Below are positions 2,421 to 11,426 of a DNA stretch of 64,000 nucleotides, piece by piece. The translations under genes were made by a program, and so were the position numbers. The notes beneath the pieces are model-generated. The model did no database searches and was not told the DNA's origin. It was given only the letters and a program-made list of their open reading frames with translations. Numbering within the stretch: the first letter of the stretch is position 1; each line of letters begins with the position of its first letter. The stretch is from the sequence record MN988561.1. One strand, given 5' to 3'.

Positions 2421-3071
2421 ATGGAAATTCGTAGGTTTATCGGAGACGTACACGGTAAGTACTCTCAGTACAAGAAGATCCTGAAGGAGTCTCCATATCC
2501 TACGATTCAAGTTGGTGATATGGGAGTAGGCTTCTACGAAAGAGATCGTGTTACTCATGAGATCAAGGCATCTGCCAATCCTCCGTATGATCTCATGGTG
2601 AAAGCTGAAGCTAGATTCGAAAGAGGTAATCATGATAATCCGAGAGTATGTAAGAATCATACTCAGTGGATTCCTGATGGCCATACAGAGACAATCGGTA
2701 AGTCTAAGGTCATGTTCATTGGAGGTGGCCTCAGTATCGATCGTGGAATGCGTATCGAAGGTGAATCTTGGTGGCCGGATGAAGAACTCAGTATGACTGA
2801 GTTGTATGATATGGTCGACAAGTATGCTGAATATCGTCCAGACGTTATGGTAACTCATGACTGCCCAGACATTATGGCTGCTATTATCTTCGGTGTGACA
2901 GATAAAGGTAATTATCCATCACGTACTCGGCAGGCATTTCAATCTATGTTCGAGATCTATCAACCTAAATTGTGGATCTTTGGTCATTGGCATAGGTCAG
3001 CCAGGTATCATCACAACGGAACGAAATTCATATGCTTAGCAGAATTAGAATACTTGGATATCGAACTTTAA
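2421..3071 (+). CDS. Calcineurin-like metallophosphoesterase
   Basis: GDVHG, QVGDMG, RGNHD, VTHDCP, FGHWH motifs in canonical order. Confidence 0.92.
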   Translation: MEIRRFIGDVHGKYSQYKKILKESPYPTIQVGDMGVGFYERDRVTHEIKASANPPYDLMVKAEARFERGNHDNPRVCKNHTQWIPDGHTETIGKSKVMFIGGGLSIDRGMRIEGESWWPDEELSMTELYDMVDKYAEYRPDVMVTHDCPDIMAAIIFGVTDKGNYPSRTRQAFQSMFEIYQPKLWIFGHWHRSARYHHNGTKFICLAELEYLDIEL

Positions 3072-3083
3072 ATGAACTCAGTG

Positions 3084-3127
3084 AATGCAGATTAGCGATA
3101 CAGATAATGGCATTGCTAATCTGCATT
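3084..3127. repeat. 16-bp intergenic inverted repeat (hairpin)
   Basis: AATGCAGATTAGCGAT (3084-3099) pairs with ATTGCTAATCTGCATT (3112-3127), one G-T pair. Confidence 0.85.
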
Positions 3128-3367
3128 GATTTCTGGGTAGCAGTCCTGAAATATGGTTTCAGACTATGGTGAATAAGATGTTTCAAGACAACGTATCAAA
3201 GGTCCTCAAGCCTTCCTCTGAGTGGAGCGTTCTGAAGAACGTTACTGTTATGGATCCTGATGGATGGGATCGTCAGAACTTCGAGATCAGTTGGAATGAA
3301 TTGATCTCAGAGGAAGAATTCGATCGACGTGCAATGATGTCAACTGTACTCTTTGTTAGGAAAGACG

Positions 3368-4096
3368 ATGTTCAATCTGACATTAGCTAAATTTGTACTC
3401 GAAGCTCATAAGTCTGATAAAGACATCACCAGTCGTAATGGATACGGTGGATACAATATCCACAAGGAATCTTATGGATTTCTTCAGAAGATTGAGAAGA
3501 AGTTCGGAGCTAAGAGTGTAGCTGATCTCGAACGAATGATCAAGAAAGAAGAGACCAGACGTAAGACTCCTGTACCAGATCCTAATCCGATCTACAAGAA
3601 TCAGCGTGCTCGGTATCGTCTTCTCAGAGACTATCTTGGAAATAGTTCAGACCTGAATGTTTACATCAGCAGCCAGGAATGGGACGTACATAACTATTTA
3701 GGTCAAGGATGGGTTGAGAAATTTAAGAGTGATTCCATTCTCCACCGTTGGTGCTGGAATGTGATGAAGCTCCAGTTTGATCTCGATGCTTTGATCATCA
3801 AAGTGCGTACTCATTCTAATGTTGTAGGCTTCGAGAAAACTAATGAAGAGAATGATATCACCTGGACTGAATTCGTCCTAGGTGAGCAAGCTCTCAATAA
3901 GTATATTGAGATCCTGGAGATCCGTGCTAATCGTAAAGCTGAACGTGAGTACGAAGAGCATCAAGAGTATCTTCGTCGTCTAGCTATTGAAGATTGGAAA
4001 CGTGAACAGTTAGCTAAGATTCGTCTTGTACAAATCAGAGACGATGTCAAGGATAAGTCTCGAGCTGACAAAAGGAAGAGGAGAGTAGCAGTATGA
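3368..4096 (+). CDS. Hypothetical protein, charged helical C-terminus
   Basis: ORF track 3353..4096; ATG 3368 follows AGGA. Confidence 0.65.
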   Translation: MFNLTLAKFVLEAHKSDKDITSRNGYGGYNIHKESYGFLQKIEKKFGAKSVADLERMIKKEETRRKTPVPDPNPIYKNQRARYRLLRDYLGNSSDLNVYISSQEWDVHNYLGQGWVEKFKSDSILHRWCWNVMKLQFDLDALIIKVRTHSNVVGFEKTNEENDITWTEFVLGEQALNKYIEILEIRANRKAEREYEEHQEYLRRLAIEDWKREQLAKIRLVQIRDDVKDKSRADKRKRRVAV

Positions 4097-4785
4097 CTAA
4101 GATTCGACATATTTCTTTCGACGTATGGAATACTCTAGTAATTCCTAATCCAGATTATGCCAGAGCACGATCCATGTACCTTGGTAAGGTATTCGATATG
4201 GTCTCGGAGGATTCTGCTAAGCTCTACTCGAGAGTTAAAAAGTGGATCGATGAACTTGCTGTCCAGACTGGTATGGGTCCTGATGCTGAGAGCAATGTAC
4301 TCATGCTTCTGAATACGGCTGATCGTTATGCAGATCCTCAGGAGATCCTTATTAACTTTGAGAATCTCTTCTTCAAGTATCCTCCGATTATTCATCATGC
4401 AGTACGTGATGGACTTCGTACGCTGAAGCATCACGGGTATACGTTCTCCGTTGCTAGCAATAGCAATTTCATATCTGGCAGAACGATGACTAAGTTCATT
4501 CATGCTGAATTTGGATGCATGGCTTATGAAGTTTACTCTGATCTCGAAGGTTATGCTAAGCCTCATCTCAGATTCTTTGAAGAAGTATTTCATGGTGCGA
4601 GGTTACAAGGTCTCGCAGACTACTCGAGTGAAATTCTACATGTCGGAGATCACGAGATCTGTGACGTGAAGGGTGCAAGCGACTACGGATTTAAGTCATT
4701 ACTTTTCACCAATCCTGAAGATATGTCCAAAGTTATTAAGAGAGTCCAGCAAAATGAACAACCACCAAGTGTATTATGCGCATAA
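4093..4785 (+). CDS. HAD-superfamily hydrolase
   Basis: Motif I ISFDVWNTL, motif II SVASNSN, motif III KPH, motif IV HVGDHEICDVKGA. Confidence 0.9.
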   Translation: MTKIRHISFDVWNTLVIPNPDYARARSMYLGKVFDMVSEDSAKLYSRVKKWIDELAVQTGMGPDAESNVLMLLNTADRYADPQEILINFENLFFKYPPIIHHAVRDGLRTLKHHGYTFSVASNSNFISGRTMTKFIHAEFGCMAYEVYSDLEGYAKPHLRFFEEVFHGARLQGLADYSSEILHVGDHEICDVKGASDYGFKSLLFTNPEDMSKVIKRVQQNEQPPSVLCA

Positions 4786-5608
4786 ATTTACTTCTATGGA
4801 AGATCTTCCATTCGATGCTGTAGACTACTGTGCTCTTAAGTTCGGATCTGACGAGGTAGCTCGTCGATTTGGATATGAATTAGCTGAGAAGTTCTTCGAG
4901 GAACATTCCAGTCGAATCGTGACGAATCATTGTGCAGTGATTCCATCTCCTTATAACTTCGTACCGAATGCAGCAACCATTCTATCGAAGCATTTCATTA
5001 ATCGTCTGAATGAACTCATCGTTGAGGTCAATGGCGATTACGTTGACTACGTTAGAATCCATCGTAAGGTCACATATACTGGTGACTTTGGTAAGCTCAA
5101 TGAGGATGCTCGTCGAAAGCTTATTGGACAGGATTCATTCTATGTCAACAAGCAGATTCTGAAGAATAAGCTCCTGATCTACTTGGACGACGTGATCATT
5201 ACTGGTGCTCACGAAGATCGTCTCAAGGAAGTCATGGTCAAGAACAAGATGAAGAATGATTGTTTCTTCGTCTACTATGGTAAGTACTTCGGTACTGAAC
5301 CTACGATCGAGAATAAGATCAACTTCGGAGGTATTGAAACTGTCGAAGATTATGTTAATTTTATTACCGATCGAGATCATCTCATTGTTCGTCCGATCAA
5401 GTACCTCCTAAGTCTACCTAATGAACAATTTAAGTTCTATCTCAACAAGACAAGTAGAACTCGTCTTGAGGAACTATTCCACTCATGCTTAGGTGAAGGG
5501 TACAATCGTATTCCTCAGTACCAGGAGAATTTTGTAGCTCTGAGAGATCAGGTCAAGTATCTGTCTGAAGAGAATAGAGTATCTCGAATTTATGACAAGG
5601 TAGGTTAA
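4754..5608 (+). CDS. ComF-like phosphoribosyltransferase (PRTase_3-like)
   Basis: PRPP-binding loop LIYLDDVIITGAHE; N-terminal Y..LKFGSDEVARRFGYELA; ATG 4754 likely start. Confidence 0.75.
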   Translation: MNNHQVYYAHKFTSMEDLPFDAVDYCALKFGSDEVARRFGYELAEKFFEEHSSRIVTNHCAVIPSPYNFVPNAATILSKHFINRLNELIVEVNGDYVDYVRIHRKVTYTGDFGKLNEDARRKLIGQDSFYVNKQILKNKLLIYLDDVIITGAHEDRLKEVMVKNKMKNDCFFVYYGKYFGTEPTIENKINFGGIETVEDYVNFITDRDHLIVRPIKYLLSLPNEQFKFYLNKTSRTRLEELFHSCLGEGYNRIPQYQENFVALRDQVKYLSEENRVSRIYDKVG

Positions 5609-5802
5609 TGATTAATAAAATTGAGATCACTGAGCAGGAGTCAATAGAATTCAAACTTGAATTCGATCTTGCTGAAGTACGTAAATCTAACTATGTTATG
5701 GTCCCTATCAGTCTAGCTCGTAAGATTGATGCGTACTTCACAGAGGAGTTCAAGCGTAATCCTACGTTTGATCCTACGACTAACACCTTCAAGTAATCAT
5801 CG

Positions 5803-5836
5803 GCCCTCATCTATGAAAGTAGGTGAGGGCTATTTT
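5803..5836 (+). terminator. Intrinsic terminator
   Basis: GCCCTCATCTA-tgaaag-TAGGTGAGGGC followed by TATTTT. Confidence 0.8.
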
Positions 5837-5856
5837 CATGCATCATAGGTGGAACC

Positions 5857-6420
5857 ATGATCTTTAGTCTTAGTAATTCAGAATACTTCAGTCTTGCAGA
5901 TGCAGTATGCACAGCTGAAGACTCTCAAGGTCGAGTACCTGTTAACAAGAATATCGTCAGGAAACTTATTACATATCTCGAAGCTGAGAAGTTCTTTAAT
6001 CTCGGTACGGTATGTTGTGTATTGCTACCAGTCGAAGATGGTCTACTATTGATTCGTCGTAATCGTAAGAGTGATCCTGGATTTGGTATGGTAGCACTTC
6101 CTGGTGGATTCCAGAAGGGTAAACAAGCTCAAAATATGTACGATGCTGCAGTAGAAGAAGTCCTAGAAGAGACAGGGATCGTAATTCATAAAGAGAATCT
6201 AAAGCTCGTGTACGGCGATACGGACGAATATGAGCACAATGTTCTATTCTTCTTGCATAATGGTCTACTTGGTAAGGCATCAATGTACATTGAGAAATTC
6301 GTACCTTCAGATGACGAGGTATCGGAGCTAGTCTACATTACTGAGCCTGTTGATACTGCATTCCCAATGCATAGTGAACAGATCAAGAAATTCTTCGAGA
6401 AGAAGTTCGCTCGACGATAG
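5857..6420 (+). CDS. Nudix hydrolase
   Basis: LLLIRR...ALPGGF...AAVEEVLEETG Nudix box. Confidence 0.9.
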   Translation: MIFSLSNSEYFSLADAVCTAEDSQGRVPVNKNIVRKLITYLEAEKFFNLGTVCCVLLPVEDGLLLIRRNRKSDPGFGMVALPGGFQKGKQAQNMYDAAVEEVLEETGIVIHKENLKLVYGDTDEYEHNVLFFLHNGLLGKASMYIEKFVPSDDEVSELVYITEPVDTAFPMHSEQIKKFFEKKFARR

Positions 6421-7927: not shown

Positions 7928-8719
7928 ATGAATAATCCTTTCAGCAAGAACATGATGGACCGTATGTTCAAGCAGGTCGACGGTGTCGTCTGGGACCTGA
8001 TGTCTGGTTCGAAGATCGGTATCAAGACGAAGGAAGGTATTGCTACTGTCGATCTCAATCTCGAAGATGAGACTGCAGCAGTAGCTCCTGTCAAAACGAC
8101 TCGTCGTAAGGCAGGTGCAGAACCTGTAGCTCCTCTCGCTATTCCTACTCCGTCTCCGATCATGGAAGCTCCGGATGCTCAGGTTTCGATCAATCTGTTC
8201 GATGACTTCGGTATGGCTCTGCCTGCATTCGCTCAATCGACTCCTGTCGAGGCTATCGGTCTCGGCGACATGATCTGGAACTCGGCTCAGAATCGTGTCA
8301 TGGGATGGGTCGTCAAGGTCAGTCCCAATCGTAAGAGCTTCAAGGTCCTCAAGACGGATGGTACTCGTAGCGAGTGGTCTCCTCCGAAGGTCAATGTACT
8401 CGGATTCGAGACTGGTACGATGGTCGTACGTTCTCTGATCAACATGCTTCCTGGTGGAGCTACTGGTCAGAATGGTCTGGAAGGTATGCAGTCGTCTCTC
8501 GGTCAGATGCTCATGATGTCGTCCATGATGGGTGGCAGTGAAGGTGACTCTGAGAACATGCTCAAGGACATCATGCCGATGATGCTCATGTCGCAGATGG
8601 GCATCGGTGGTGCTCAGGGTGGTATGGGTCAGATGATGCAGACCATGATGATGATGAAAATGATGGGTGGTATGAATCGCGGTAGCGGTGGTACCAAGCG
8701 TAGTTTTTTCGACAACTAA
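7928..8719 (+). CDS. Met/Gly-rich low-complexity protein (263 aa, short isoform)
   Basis: AAGGAG SD then ATG 7928; central SH3/KOW-like segment (IGLGDMIWNS...GWVVKV); C-terminus GQMMQTMMMMKMMGGM. Confidence 0.85.
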   Translation: MNNPFSKNMMDRMFKQVDGVVWDLMSGSKIGIKTKEGIATVDLNLEDETAAVAPVKTTRRKAGAEPVAPLAIPTPSPIMEAPDAQVSINLFDDFGMALPAFAQSTPVEAIGLGDMIWNSAQNRVMGWVVKVSPNRKSFKVLKTDGTRSEWSPPKVNVLGFETGTMVVRSLINMLPGGATGQNGLEGMQSSLGQMLMMSSMMGGSEGDSENMLKDIMPMMLMSQMGIGGAQGGMGQMMQTMMMMKMMGGMNRGSGGTKRSFFDN

Positions 8720-8780
8720 GCTCTGATTCTGGAGAGGATGGATCTCGGATTAGACTCCGAGATCTGTCTTCGGAGCTTAG
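8704..8780 (+). other. Predicted programmed -1 ribosomal frameshift signal
   Basis: Slippery heptamer T_TTT_TTC (8704-8710) in phase with 7928..8719; 5-nt spacer; stem-loop 8716-8780; the -1 frame opens right after TAG 8701-8703 and stays open to 9147. Confidence 0.75.
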
Positions 8781-9147
8781 ACATCTCCGTATCGTAGGAG
8801 AGACATATAGATCACGGTATGCACAAAATGTGTATCGTGATGTTAAAGAAAATGATCCAGTCATCCTCGAATGGGAGAAGACCAATCGTATGGATGGATG
8901 TGCTCATAAGGTCTTCGTCTACGATCCAATCAATGAACGAGGTACCCATGTAGGGTATGTCGACCGAAATCAAGCAGCTAGGATTGTTAGTGAACTTGCC
9001 AAGTATAAATACACTGAGAAAACTCATCGTATTGTTGGTAAGATCACGAGGAACAATCCTGGTAAGTACAACGAAATCGAGATACTAGGACTCATCAGCA
9101 CTACAGAGTCTGAACAGCATCTCAAAGATTATTATAGAAGGAAATAA
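8710..9147 (+). CDS. HIRAN domain, predicted as the -1 frame extension of 7928..8719
   Basis: IVGETYR...VILEWEKTNRMDGCAHKV...HVGYVDRNQAARI matches the HIRAN pattern (V.G..Y...V.L..E..N..D..A..V....GY.....A); IVGETYR lies upstream of the only canonical in-frame start (GTG 8830), which has no SD. Confidence 0.75.
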   Translation, partial: RQLSSDSGEDGSRIRLRDLSSELRHLRIVGETYRSRYAQNVYRDVKENDPVILEWEKTNRMDGCAHKVFVYDPINERGTHVGYVDRNQAARIVSELAKYKYTEKTHRIVGKITRNNPGKYNEIEILGLISTTESEQHLKDYYRRK

Positions 9148-9151
9148 CCAC

Positions 9152-10075
9152 ATGGGTGGCGGACGTTTTGATACTAATGCATATGCAAGCCTGTCGACTG
9201 CTCGTACAGTTCGTACTGACGGTACTCGTATGCATCACACTGAAGTCTTCAAAGCTAAGGTCGTGGATAGCAAGTTCTCTCCTCGCAGCATCAAGGTACG
9301 TGAGTCGGTTGACTCTGAGACATCTCCGAATTCTCGTCCGATCATCGTCGGTCTTGACTTCAGTGGATCGATGGGATCGATTGCAGGTGAGATGGCTAAC
9401 AATCAGCTTGGTAAGCTGATGGAGAATGTCGTTGGTACGAAGGCAGTAGCTGATCCTCATCTGCTGTTCCTCGGTATCGATGACGTTCATGCATCCTTCT
9501 CGTCTGAATCTCTTCAGGCTACTCAGTTCGAAGCTGATATTCGTATCGCTGAACAGCTGACTGAACTGAAGAATATCGGTCGAGGTGGAGGTAATGGATT
9601 CGAATCCTACAATCTCGCATGGTACTTCGCTGCATACAAGACGAAGATCGACTCCTTCAAGAAGCGTGGTAAGAAGGGACTCCTCTTCACTATCGGCGAT
9701 GAAGGTGTACCTGCAGATTTGAATGCATCTCATCTTGAGACTGTCTTCGGATCAGGTGATCTTCCTGTTCTCAGCAACGATAGTCTCCTGAGCACTGTTC
9801 GTCAGGAATGGGATGTATTCCACATCATTGCTGAGGAAGGTGACTACTGCAGAAATGGTAGTAGCCATGTCAGCAGGCAGTGGTATGGTCTCCTCGGCAA
9901 TCGTGCTATTCTGATGAGCGACTATCGCTACGTCTCGGATATCATCGTTGCTACGATCGCTGTCAATGAAGGTCGTGATCCGGATGATCTCCTGTCTTCT
10001 TACGAGGACAAGGAAGCTCGTAAGGTTATCGAGCGTGCACTCTACGGTATGCGAGATTTCGCTAAGTCTCTGTAA
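9152..10075 (+). CDS. von Willebrand factor A (vWA) domain protein
   Basis: MIDAS IIVGLDFSGSMG, GGGNGFESY, LLFTIGDEG; N-terminal MGGGRF. Confidence 0.88.
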   Translation: MGGGRFDTNAYASLSTARTVRTDGTRMHHTEVFKAKVVDSKFSPRSIKVRESVDSETSPNSRPIIVGLDFSGSMGSIAGEMANNQLGKLMENVVGTKAVADPHLLFLGIDDVHASFSSESLQATQFEADIRIAEQLTELKNIGRGGGNGFESYNLAWYFAAYKTKIDSFKKRGKKGLLFTIGDEGVPADLNASHLETVFGSGDLPVLSNDSLLSTVRQEWDVFHIIAEEGDYCRNGSSHVSRQWYGLLGNRAILMSDYRYVSDIIVATIAVNEGRDPDDLLSSYEDKEARKVIERALYGMRDFAKSL

Positions 10076-10100
10076 TCTGCTCCAATAATCTTGGACTGAA

Positions 10101-10142
10101 TAGGTGAACTAGAGCTCCCTAAGAGATTTCTTCTTAGGGAGC
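10101..10142 (+). promoter_or_regulatory. Degenerate motif copy 3, embedded in an 11-bp hairpin
   Basis: TAGGTGAACTA-13nt-GATTTCTTCTT; GCTCCCTAAGA (10114-10124) pairs with TCTTAGGGAGC (10132-10142). Confidence 0.55.
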
Positions 10143-10175
10143 AATCCCGTTTAACTCAACTAGGATTTCACTACT

Positions 10176-11426
10176 ATGAAGAATGCTCATATCGTTATTG
10201 GTGCACAATACGGAGATGAAGGGAAGGGTAGTACTGTTAATCTCCTTGCTCAGAAATATCCAGATGCATTGAATGTCAGGTTCAATGGTGGAGCTCAAGC
10301 AGGACATACTGTGACACTCGAGGATGGTCGTCGTCACGTATTCTCTCACTTTGGATCAGGTAGTCTCCAAGGACTGGATACGTATTTCAACGAGTCTTCC
10401 ATCGTGAATCCTTGGAGATTCAAGGATGAGCATACTGTAATCATGAGTGAATTCGGTCTGAGTCCTCTTGTTTTTGTACATGAGAATGCTCTGGTCACGT
10501 CGCCATACGATATGGCAATCAATCAACTCTGGGAGACTTGCCGTAGTGGAGATCGTCACGGATCCTGCGGTATGGGTATTTATGAGACGATCCTGAGATC
10601 TCGTAATCCTGAATCTCTTGTACGAGTACATGAACTAGTTTATCATGTCTTTGAAGACATCAATGATCGGTACAAAGAATATGCGTATCGTAGACTCCAA
10701 GATGTCAGGGATTTTCATCCTGACTGTGAAGAATTCATTAAGGATACTGAGAAATTTATTGATAGTGAAGATGTTACTCGTCAGTTCTTTCTCGACTATT
10801 CATTCTTCATGTCGATGATTAATGTTGTTAAAGACGATATTAATATCTATCCGCAGTACGATACTGTGATCTTCGAAGGAGCTCAAGGTCTCCAACTCGA
10901 CCAGAATTATGTTGAGTATCTAGGTAATCTGCCTCATGCTACTCCATCCAATCCTGGACTAGGTAACAAGTCACTCCACGATGCATTCGAGAAGTATGGT
11001 CTCACTGAAGACCATATTCACGTGTACTATCTGACGAGATTCTATCAGACTCGTCACGGTAATGGACCATTCGATCGTGAGGTTAATCCTGACGCTCTAG
11101 GCGACATTGTTGATCTCACCAATATCGACAATCCTCATCAAGGATCGATTCGGTATGCTCCACTCAATGTCTTCAGTCTACTCGAAGCAGTCGAGTTCGA
11201 TCTTCAGTACATCGATAACTGCAGACCATATCTTGTGGTCACATGTGTTGACCAAGTTGTCAACGATGAAGTTGTCATCAAAGCATTGCATGATGACAGT
11301 CACGTTAAGATTCCATTCGAGGATTTGAAGATGATCCTACGGGATAACTTTGAATTCATGTACGGTATCTTCTACTCTGACGGAAAATCTATGAAATACG
11401 AGGAACATCTTTATGTCGCAGCATGA
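10176..11426 (+). CDS. purA: Adenylosuccinate synthetase-like protein (divergent PurA clade)
   Basis: GAQYGDEGKG, RFNGGAQAGHT, IFEGAQG, TRHGNGPF; Asp-binding loop and TKLD motif diverged (TNIDNPHQGSIRY; TCVD). Confidence 0.85.
   Translation: MKNAHIVIGAQYGDEGKGSTVNLLAQKYPDALNVRFNGGAQAGHTVTLEDGRRHVFSHFGSGSLQGLDTYFNESSIVNPWRFKDEHTVIMSEFGLSPLVFVHENALVTSPYDMAINQLWETCRSGDRHGSCGMGIYETILRSRNPESLVRVHELVYHVFEDINDRYKEYAYRRLQDVRDFHPDCEEFIKDTEKFIDSEDVTRQFFLDYSFFMSMINVVKDDINIYPQYDTVIFEGAQGLQLDQNYVEYLGNLPHATPSNPGLGNKSLHDAFEKYGLTEDHIHVYYLTRFYQTRHGNGPFDREVNPDALGDIVDLTNIDNPHQGSIRYAPLNVFSLLEAVEFDLQYIDNCRPYLVVTCVDQVVNDEVVIKALHDDSHVKIPFEDLKMILRDNFEFMYGIFYSDGKSMKYEEHLYVAA

Follow-up and report, generated by a model that had tools for sequence, protein, structure and literature searches.

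The 64,000-nucleotide stretch of DNA analysed in this study (the window) is part of the genome of Rhizobium phage RHph_TM61 (MN988561.1), a jumbo phage of about 203 kb that belongs to the genus Cuauhnahuacvirus of the Kleczkowskaviridae. In this part of the genome, where every gene resides on the + strand, a gene for a Met/Gly-rich protein is followed by a reading frame for a HIRAN domain, a gene for a protein with a von Willebrand factor A (vWA) fold and a gene for an enzyme related to adenylosuccinate synthetase (PurA), with the HIRAN frame being shifted by -1 relative to that of the Met-rich gene (Table 1). The GenBank entry, which matches the region at 100% identity with unchanged coordinates, labels the products as hypothetical proteins and 'adenylosuccinate synthetase'. 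Nine other matching records, which correspond to eight further phages, are at least 96.5% identical over the region, with the identity reaching 100% in RHph_TM21B. A first-pass annotation of the window had described these genes as a candidate module with strong Shine-Dalgarno sequences and short gaps. All four reading frames are present on the + strand where it had placed them. The Shine-Dalgarno sequence of the Met-rich gene (AAGGAG) is indeed strong and the gap before the vWA gene comprises only 4 nucleotides, but the corresponding sequence is moderate for the vWA gene and weak for the PurA-like gene, which is preceded by a gap of 100 nucleotides.

A conserved gene pair in phages and bacteria

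The proposed conservation of the module is most evident for its last two genes. A tblastn search against 50,697 phage records located the vWA gene in 219 and the PurA-like gene in 238 records, nearly all of which originate from the same four groups, comprising ten Rhizobium phage records, six Vibrio phages of about 190 kb (the Va1 group), one gut phage contig and about 200 cluster C mycobacteriophages. In all four of these cultured phage lineages, both genes are adjacent and on the same strand. A profile scan of IMG/VR yielded 519 vWA relatives and, in 76 of the best 80 loci, the PurA-like gene follows on the same strand; with both viral sets combined, the pair is found together in 116 of 122 viral loci. 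In a scan of bacterial genomes that included one genome per species, a vWA relative is carried by at least 593 species. Among the best 80 bacterial loci inspected for neighbours, the PurA-like gene follows the vWA gene in 76, the other four being contig ends, and the loci of Clostridium carboxidivorans and Massilia are located in ordinary chromosomal regions and not in prophages. Since their adjacency recurs in the phage, IMG/VR and bacterial scans, the vWA and PurA-like genes constitute a real and widespread two-gene unit, whose members form an almost obligate pair. While these two genes co-occur in hundreds of unrelated genomes, which exceeds what chance would produce, the Met-rich gene and the HIRAN frame recur in part of them only. 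A large protein database contains 1767 homologues of the vWA protein and 3694 relatives of the PurA-like enzyme, with no domain fusions among the best 120 of the latter.

Table 1. Features of the module in RHph_TM61 (positions refer to the window).
Feature	Position	Strand	Description and basis
Two-frame gene	7928..9147	+	Zero frame: 263-residue Met-rich protein; -1 frame: HIRAN-bearing extension
Conserved all-beta N-terminal domain of the Met-rich protein	7967..8428	+	Residues 14-167; AlphaFold2, family alignments
Met/Gly-rich tail	8437..8716	+	Residues 171-263; composition, AlphaFold2, alignments
Long bipartite RNA stem-loop, predicted frameshift stimulator	8716..8780	+	RNA folding compared with shuffles
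HIRAN domain, -1 frame	8797..9033	+	Pfam PF08797; C-terminal match to PHROG 8026
vWA-fold protein, 307 residues	9152..10075	+	AlphaFold2 and Foldseek; PHROG 2971
PurA-family enzyme, 416 residues	10176..11426	+	Pfam PF00709; PHROG 1211

The PurA-family enzyme

The divergent nature of the PurA-like enzyme, as claimed in the first-pass annotation, is reflected in its relationship to established families. The protein matches the Pfam family Adenylsucc_synt (PF00709, E = 4e-34), but its scores are far below the cut-offs of the NCBIfam PurA equivalogs NF002223 (99.6 bits vs 402) and TIGR00184 (88.4 bits vs 395.6) and also below that of the PurZ family NF038379 (35.8 bits vs 300), whose match is confined to the N-terminal 112 residues. 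In a search of the PDB with a profile of the family, PurA structures are found at E = 1e-50 and the PurZ structures 6FM1, 6FKO and 7ODX at E = 1e-11 to 1e-7; as judged by sequence, the enzyme is closer to bacterial PurA than to PurZ.

An alignment of 34 family members to E. coli PurA, whose numbering is used here, reveals which parts of the active site are preserved. The family has kept the fold and the GDEGKG P-loop together with Asp13, Lys16, His41, Gln224 and Thr239, with the P-loop, Asp13, His41 and Gln224 being invariant or near-invariant, and the C-terminal guanine-binding elements are recognisable by eye in a region that no tool aligned. In contrast to PurA, the determinants of L-aspartate are replaced, as are several ligands of the 5'-phosphate. 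Among the residues that recognise L-aspartate in E. coli PurA (Val273, Thr300 and Arg303), the first is converted to an invariant His and the second to an aromatic residue, whereas Arg303 is not conserved; in addition, Thr301 has become an invariant Gln. The 5'-phosphate of inosine monophosphate (IMP) is held in E. coli PurA by Asn38, Thr128/129, Thr239 and Arg143. In the family described here, Asn38 is replaced by Gln and Thr128/129 by Ser/Cys, and Arg143 has no equivalent. This pattern suggests that the enzyme would retain the phosphoryl activation of a 6-oxopurine while using an amine other than aspartate, and that its nucleotide may have a group other than a free phosphate at the 5' position. 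The statement that enzymes of the PurA family ligate an amine donor onto a purine nucleotide thus describes the chemistry correctly, but does not anticipate that the aspartate pocket is remodelled. At the level of sequence, the family is a distinct branch of PurA-type proteins, in which the amine pocket is new and an adaptor is obligate and for which databases use the name 'adenylosuccinate synthase' or a PurZ-type name. The latter, '2-aminooxy adenylosuccinate synthetase', is assigned in RefSeq and PHROG to the window gene, to NC_070966.1 gp019 and to the mycobacteriophage and Vibrio-phage relatives, and is not supported by the sequence comparisons.

The retained P-loop and catalytic residues, the Pfam match and the fact that the best matches in the PDB are true PurA enzymes could also be taken to indicate that the protein is a working adenylosuccinate synthetase that boosts the supply of AMP, with the vWA, Met-rich and HIRAN sequences as unrelated neighbours, and DHFR, PRTase_3, HAD and NUDIX genes in the surroundings would be in line with such a role in ordinary purine metabolism. 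We nevertheless consider it unlikely, in view of the large distance to the PurA equivalog cut-off, the replacement of three aspartate determinants and several IMP-phosphate ligands by other conserved residues and the pairing with the vWA gene, which holds for about 95% of over 200 loci from different phyla. Moreover, the annotation of the first 50 kb of the related phage TM30 does not include an adenylosuccinate lyase.

The vWA partner

Compared to the enzyme, the partner protein is less accessible to sequence comparison. It contains a DFSGS motif of the DxSxS type found in metal ion-dependent adhesion sites (MIDAS), which is DVTGS in most relatives, but it does not match any family in Pfam or NCBIfam and a sequence search of the PDB yielded nothing useful. 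Its assignment thus rests on the fold, since sequence-only searches were of no use. An AlphaFold2 model built from 60 homologues is of high confidence (predicted local distance difference test 93.3, predicted template modelling score 0.92) and in a Foldseek search of the PDB retrieves, at a probability of 1.00, the vWA domains of integrin I, SpaC, Ku80, Rpn10 and TFIIH p44. Both motif and predicted fold are therefore consistent with the vWA protein proposed in the first-pass annotation. Invariant columns of the family include Asp69, Ser73 and Asp183, and a conserved Asp is found after strand beta-4.

A further property concerns the N-terminus. Its first two residues are Met-Gly in 97 of 99 loci, with the N-terminal 12-mer existing in 84 different versions and positions 6 and 11 being occupied by aromatic residues. 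Such conservation of the N-terminal part of a vWA protein (9152-9190 in the window and the equivalent region of 99 related loci) is unusual. In one alphaproteobacterial metagenome-assembled genome (L155, 6001-9250), two vWA genes are arranged in tandem ahead of the PurA-like gene.

The exchangeable third gene

The Met-rich gene, which the first-pass annotation had regarded as the third component of the module, is found upstream of the pair in many jumbo-phage loci, but is replaced elsewhere by a J-domain/kinase-like gene or by nothing. It directly precedes the vWA gene in Va1, in the gut phage and in 16 of the best 80 IMG/VR loci, 37 of which carry instead a J-domain/kinase-like gene and 27 neither of the two or a contig edge. 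The J-domain/kinase-like gene is also found upstream of the vWA gene in the mycobacteriophages and in 54 of the best 80 bacterial loci, where the Met-rich gene is absent (0 of 80); no conserved upstream gene was seen in the remaining loci. Its product, of about 350 residues, contains an HPD motif, a DnaJ match at or near the Pfam threshold and a Pkinase match.

The Met-rich protein of RHph_TM61 (7928-8719, 263 residues) consists of two parts of different composition, with Met accounting for 6% of its first 169 residues and for 24% of its last 94 (170-263), which also contain 21% Gly. AlphaFold2 predicts three helices of low confidence for this tail, at whose end a Phe-Phe-acidic motif is conserved. 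For the N-terminal beta domain, no significant match was detected in the PDB (E > 0.3), and its matches in BFVD are solely uncharacterised phage proteins. In the window, this domain contains a Pro/Ala-rich insertion of about 40 residues (~8057-8180) that is not present in any other aligned family member. The family encompasses 400 homologues, in which a single zinc-finger match is the only Pfam domain. The Va1 member (L003, 4222-4935) is missing from its GenBank annotation, and distant homologues in four IMG/VR loci (L215-L218) contain an extra N-terminal region of about 160 residues. An in-frame HIRAN domain in this region, initially recognised by eye, was discarded as it found support neither from Pfam nor from a custom HIRAN profile. 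In the one locus of this group that was checked (L215), the preceding gene encodes a UvdE UV-damage endonuclease.

A predicted programmed frameshift

The HIRAN frame is open from just before the stop codon of the Met-rich gene to position 9147. It is annotated as a separate open reading frame of 105 residues (8830-9147) starting with GTG, ahead of which the -1 stretch does not contain any ATG, GTG or TTG. No Shine-Dalgarno-like sequence precedes this GTG. On the translated -1 stretch, the Pfam family HIRAN (PF08797) matches residues 32-110 with 34.9 bits at a cut-off of 24.7 (profile positions 6-77). As the GTG corresponds to residue 43 and is thus located inside the domain, about 11 codons of the latter precede the annotated start. 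The same family matches six of seven lineages at E <= 0.01, four of them above the gathering cut-off.

The suggestion that the domain is added to the Met-rich protein by frameshifting is strongly supported by comparative sequence analysis and predicted RNA structure. All loci with at least 400 nucleotides between the Met-rich stop and the vWA start contain an in-frame heptamer of the type X_XXY_YYZ a few codons ahead of the stop, a -1 frame that stays open over the heptamer and extends 143-214 codons beyond the stop, and the HIRAN domain in this -1 frame. To enlarge the sample, IMG/VR was scanned a second time with the Met-rich family as seed, and identical sequences were removed. In the resulting set of 19 distinct HIRAN-bearing sequences, the domain is in all cases encoded in the -1 frame and an unusually stable stem-loop is found downstream in 14. 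The heptamer, which occurs in three forms (U_UUU_UUC, C_CCU_UUC and C_CCU_UUU), is present in 18 of these sequences vs 2 of 30 without HIRAN (Fisher p = 3e-10), and the median minimum free energy of the next 100 nucleotides is -43.9 kcal/mol (z = -4.7) in the former vs -18.4 kcal/mol (z = -0.3) in the latter group (Mann-Whitney p = 7e-7), although the loci are not phylogenetically independent and both p-values therefore overstate the significance. The stem-loop in the window starts 5 nucleotides after the slippery motif and has a minimum free energy of -43.9 kcal/mol (z = -4.8), with none of 200 shuffled sequences being as stable. In the seven lineages that were folded, the stem starts 5-7 nucleotides after the heptamer and reaches -35 to -51 kcal/mol, again with 0 of 200 shuffles of equal stability, and its sequence varies whereas its architecture is constant. 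The heptamer is not a by-product of the encoded C-terminal peptide, because six lineages without HIRAN encode this Pro-Phe peptide at their end by different codons, which do not form a heptamer. In the related phage TM30, heptamer, -1 extension and architecture are identical to those found in the window. In its sequence and predicted structure, the site, located where both frames briefly overlap, is composed like a canonical signal for programmed -1 ribosomal frameshifting. The major product would accordingly be a short isoform, and a minor one would have a C-terminal HIRAN domain.

It is conceivable that no programmed frameshift takes place and that the HIRAN domain is separately started at the GTG or a non-canonical codon, that it is the remnant of a decayed fusion or that a sequencing error has occurred in a homopolymer, in which case the downstream hairpin would be a transcript-end or processing signal. 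The separate open reading frame annotated in GenBank, the homopolymer run at the site and the presence, in some lineages, of a start codon 13-19 codons into the -1 stretch and ahead of the domain could be brought forward in its favour. We find this explanation improbable. The annotated GTG would truncate the domain and is not preceded by a Shine-Dalgarno sequence, the -1 relationship is maintained in 19 of 19 distinct sequences, with three different forms of the heptamer in 18 of them, and the spacing to the stem-loop is conserved at 5-7 nucleotides. All ten sequenced relatives match the region with at least 96.5% identity and carry the same annotated genes, and TM30, which was checked directly, has an identical heptamer and -1 extension. 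Frame, heptamer and stem-loop are conserved in many independent assemblies, which makes an assembly error unlikely, and no T tract follows the stem-loop.

The HIRAN domain is present only in a minority of lineages, as some of those with a Met-rich gene lack it, and it is absent from the bacterial versions of the module. The sensing of DNA ends, which the first-pass annotation had put forward as a possible role, can therefore not be the core function of the pair, and the model based on it is supported in part only. A different kind of extension may exist in three IMG/VR loci (L190-L192), where the Met-rich homologue is located away from the pair and its end contains a heptamer of the dnaX type (A_AAA_AAG). 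In these cases, the -1 frame is open for 80 codons and has no Pfam match, and a strong downstream structure was not found.

Association with NAD+ and ADP-ribose metabolism

Clustering of the genes surrounding bacterial and phage loci has revealed an association of the pair that had escaped the first-pass annotation, as had its wide distribution in bacterial chromosomes. In 41 of the 80 bacterial loci, a gene encoding an NrtR-type regulator, composed of a Nudix domain and an NrtR winged helix, directly precedes the J-domain gene, from which it is in most cases transcribed divergently. No such regulator is found in the phage window and the adjacency holds for bacterial homologues only. NrtR proteins are ADP-ribose-responsive regulators of nicotinamide adenine dinucleotide (NAD) metabolism (PMC2330246; PMC9503650). 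In the predicted conflict systems described by Iyer et al. 2022 (PMC9503650), NrtR-like regulators are assigned a function in sensing ADP-ribose and vWA proteins one as chaperones that bind peptides; a term search of the same text did not find 'adenylosuccinate' or 'PurA', and HIRAN appears there in unrelated contexts only. In several loci of the Competibacter type among the bacterial loci L093-L170, a palindrome of the type TTATTTG-N7-CAAATAA recurs between the nrtR-like and J-domain genes and is a candidate operator for the adjacent regulator with Nudix and winged helix-turn-helix domains.

A second signal is found in phages. A NadM-Nudix gene, which combines a cytidylyltransferase with a NUDIX domain, is contained in 29 phage loci with modules of the Met-rich type, and a NadV/Nampt gene in 32 phage loci carrying the Met-rich gene, where it is located either just before the latter or just after the PurA-like gene. 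In Vibrio phage Va1, a NADAR gene (L003, 3203-3859, Pfam E = 1e-48) is positioned two genes upstream of the Met-rich gene and, in the window, a NUDIX gene resides 1.5 kb upstream of the module. As both neighbourhood signals, NrtR in bacteria and NadM/NadV in phages, are independent of each other, they tie the pair to NAD+/ADP-ribose metabolism.

The NUDIX gene (5857-6420) is part of a set of upstream genes with a presumed role in nucleotide metabolism (2421-6420), which further encode a Metallophos protein (2421-3071), a HAD hydrolase (4093-4785) and a PRTase_3/ComF-like phosphoribosyltransferase (4754-5608, Pfam E = 9e-46), and which resembles the 'nucleoside-like metabolite' genes associated with Ter systems. 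Of these genes, NUDIX is the only one with relatives close to the triad at other loci. The triad could be thought to belong to a stress system of the Ter type, in which the vWA protein would be an analogue of TerY acting together with the PRTase_3, HAD and metallophosphatase genes 1.5-5.5 kb upstream, and the bacterial vWA gene, which adjoins a kinase-like gene, does recall TerY-P triads. However, PRTase_3, HAD and Metallophos are not conserved together with the triad of the window, beside which they are found only in close Rhizobium-phage relatives and in none of about 215 other loci. A Ter-type system, with neither TerD nor TelA genes being seen and the vWA protein lacking any match in Pfam or NCBIfam, is for this reason not supported and appears decidedly unlikely.

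Discussion

The described properties are best accounted for if the genes in RHph_TM61 are regarded as the form taken in jumbo phages by a widespread core of two genes, whose third subunit can be exchanged. This explanation, which in its full form consists of five steps, is the one we favour, although tentatively and with slightly less than even confidence. Its core would consist of a complex between the vWA-fold adaptor and the PurA-family enzyme. In the enzyme, a nucleoside triphosphate would most likely still activate the 6-oxo group of a purine nucleotide, to which an amine other than L-aspartate would then be added to yield an N6-substituted adenine-type nucleotide. The vWA protein would be its obligate partner, either as a MIDAS-type peptide-binding adaptor or possibly as a substrate. 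The third subunit would target or regulate the complex, a role that may be played by the J-domain/kinase-like protein in bacteria and some phages and, in RHph_TM61, by a protein combining a novel beta domain with a Met/Gly-rich tail. Near the end of the gene encoding this protein, the predicted -1 frameshift would generate a second, longer isoform containing the HIRAN domain. HIRAN domains bind DNA 3' ends and the longer isoform might thus tether a fraction of the assembly to such ends. The setting would be NAD+/ADP-ribose metabolism, with the system probably being involved in a conflict between phage and host over NAD+ and active while NAD+ is broken down.

Several observations weigh against this interpretation, in addition to the shared ancestry of the loci used in the statistical comparison of frameshift sites. 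In two IMG/VR loci (L054 and L083), no PurA-like gene is found within 5 kb of the vWA gene. The link of the Met-rich family to the pair is not a strict one either, as neither the vWA nor the PurA-like gene is found within about 4 kb in about 10 of 48 Met-rich loci, two of which have the HIRAN extension. The IMG/VR loci L213 and L214 contain the Met-rich gene with the heptamer and the HIRAN domain in the -1 frame but neither gene of the pair within about 3.9 kb downstream, and the Met-rich/HIRAN unit can therefore exist away from the pair. The kinase-like partner contains His-Gly-Ala or His-Asn-Ala in place of the His-Arg-Asp of kinases (L004, 3835-4965, Mycobacterium phage MoMoMixon gp256; L007, 4645-5760). 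It may thus be a pseudokinase and, with the aspartate of this motif apparently replaced, might phosphorylate nothing. Part of the NadV/NadM signal in phages may be due to synteny that related jumbo phages have in common, and NadV is widespread among phages at large (2013 records). Finally, none of the PADLOC v2 models of known anti-phage defence or anti-defence systems matches the vWA, PurA-like or Met-rich proteins, the only matches being weak ones of PDC-M03B to HIRAN and generic kinase matches, so that a role in conflict is deduced only from the neighbouring genes.

A more specific version of the chemistry would link both members of the pair directly. The enzyme might join a purine nucleotide via its C6 position to the alpha-amine of the N-terminal Gly of the vWA protein, and this 'N-terminal purinylation' would correspond to the PurA reaction, with aspartate being replaced by the amine of a protein. 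Such a reaction would explain the one-to-one pairing of the genes, the lost ligands of the aspartate carboxylates and the Met-Gly N-terminus, but we view both the modification and its proposed relation to the PurA reaction as long shots. If true, bacteria would switch on this modification by an ADP-ribose-sensing regulator, phages would use it within NAD+ salvage clusters and the frameshift isoform would carry part of the modified pool to DNA 3' ends.

The relationship to known systems further delineates what distinguishes the module. PurZ of phages with Z-genomes is, like the enzyme described here, a phage-borne paralogue of PurA with altered substrate use, but it differs in its purine substrate (dGMP) and keeps aspartate, whereas here the amine pocket is changed, in a family that is mostly bacterial and shows weak sequence similarity to PurZ. 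That the enzyme is itself a PurZ that marks a 2-aminoadenine (Z) genome, as the PHROG 1211 label and the RefSeq annotation of TM30 would have it, is largely refuted by its low score and the far weaker match of its profile to PurZ than to PurA structures, by the loss of the residues that recognise aspartate, which PurZ still uses, by its abundance in bacterial chromosomes and by the absence of Z-cluster partners of the DatZ, MazZ or DpoZ type from the annotation of the first 50 kb of TM30, and is the least probable of the alternatives.

The arrangement of a nucleotide-using enzyme encoded beside a vWA adaptor with a MIDAS-type motif is shared with MoxR-vWA, the chelatases BchI/BchD and CobS/CobT, and CbbQ/CbbO. 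In pairs of nucleoside triphosphatases and vWA proteins, the latter is thought to hold an acidic peptide of its partner. However, the nucleoside triphosphatase of these pairs is an AAA+ ATPase, whereas the enzyme described here is a ligase of the PurA family (SIMIBI class) that is paired with a vWA protein, which is also not the case in PurA (EC 6.3.4.4) itself. An adjacent Nudix regulator with a DNA-binding domain, as found in the bacterial loci, and a vWA component are features in common with ADP-ribose-sensing conflict systems regulated by NrtR/WYL proteins, although those centre on ADP-ribosylglycohydrolases and phosphatases (PMC9503650), and phage modules are embedded between NadM-Nudix and NadV, the components of the NAD+ salvage pathway NARP2. 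The frameshift site has its counterparts in the phage tail-assembly chaperone G/GT and in E. coli dnaX, with which it shares the heptamer, a short spacer, a stable structure and the predicted production of short and extended isoforms. In contrast to these cases, it is located in another gene family and outside a tail operon, and would add HIRAN as a module. The HIRAN domain itself resembles that of HLTF by a Pfam match above the gathering score and differs in being a small C-terminal appendage of a Met-rich protein that is not combined with a helicase or nuclease.

Every part of the module is thus of a known fold or mechanism, be it the PurA family, vWA, HIRAN or -1 frameshifting, whereas the gene association and the chemistry of the enzyme may be new; searches of the literature and of PADLOC, Pfam, NCBIfam and PHROG found neither the pair nor the triad nor the frameshift described. 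The scale of the family is considerable, with thousands of homologues that extend to more than 500 viral contigs, and the product of the enzyme could reveal a new purine-nucleotide chemistry. With NrtR as neighbour in bacteria and NadV/NadM clusters in phages, the pair is a candidate for a new player in the conflict of phages and hosts over NAD+. The predicted frameshift would be a previously unreported conserved case of programmed -1 recoding outside of tail genes and would illustrate how part of the molecules of a protein can be equipped with a DNA-targeting domain by recoding. Since current annotations split the two-frame gene and truncate the HIRAN domain, their correction is due.

A few further observations concern the literature and the window itself. 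A role of PurA-type enzymes in countering the Kongming dITP system was rejected, as the preprint does not contain a statement to this effect. The 100-nucleotide spacer between the vWA and PurA-like genes contains a perfect inverted repeat of 11 base pairs with a loop of 7 nucleotides (10114-10142) that is not followed by a T tract and that may be a processing or regulatory element. Finally, the region encompassing the Met-rich, HIRAN and vWA sequences (8001-10000) has a GC fraction of 0.483, compared to about 0.41-0.45 in the flanking 2-kb bins.

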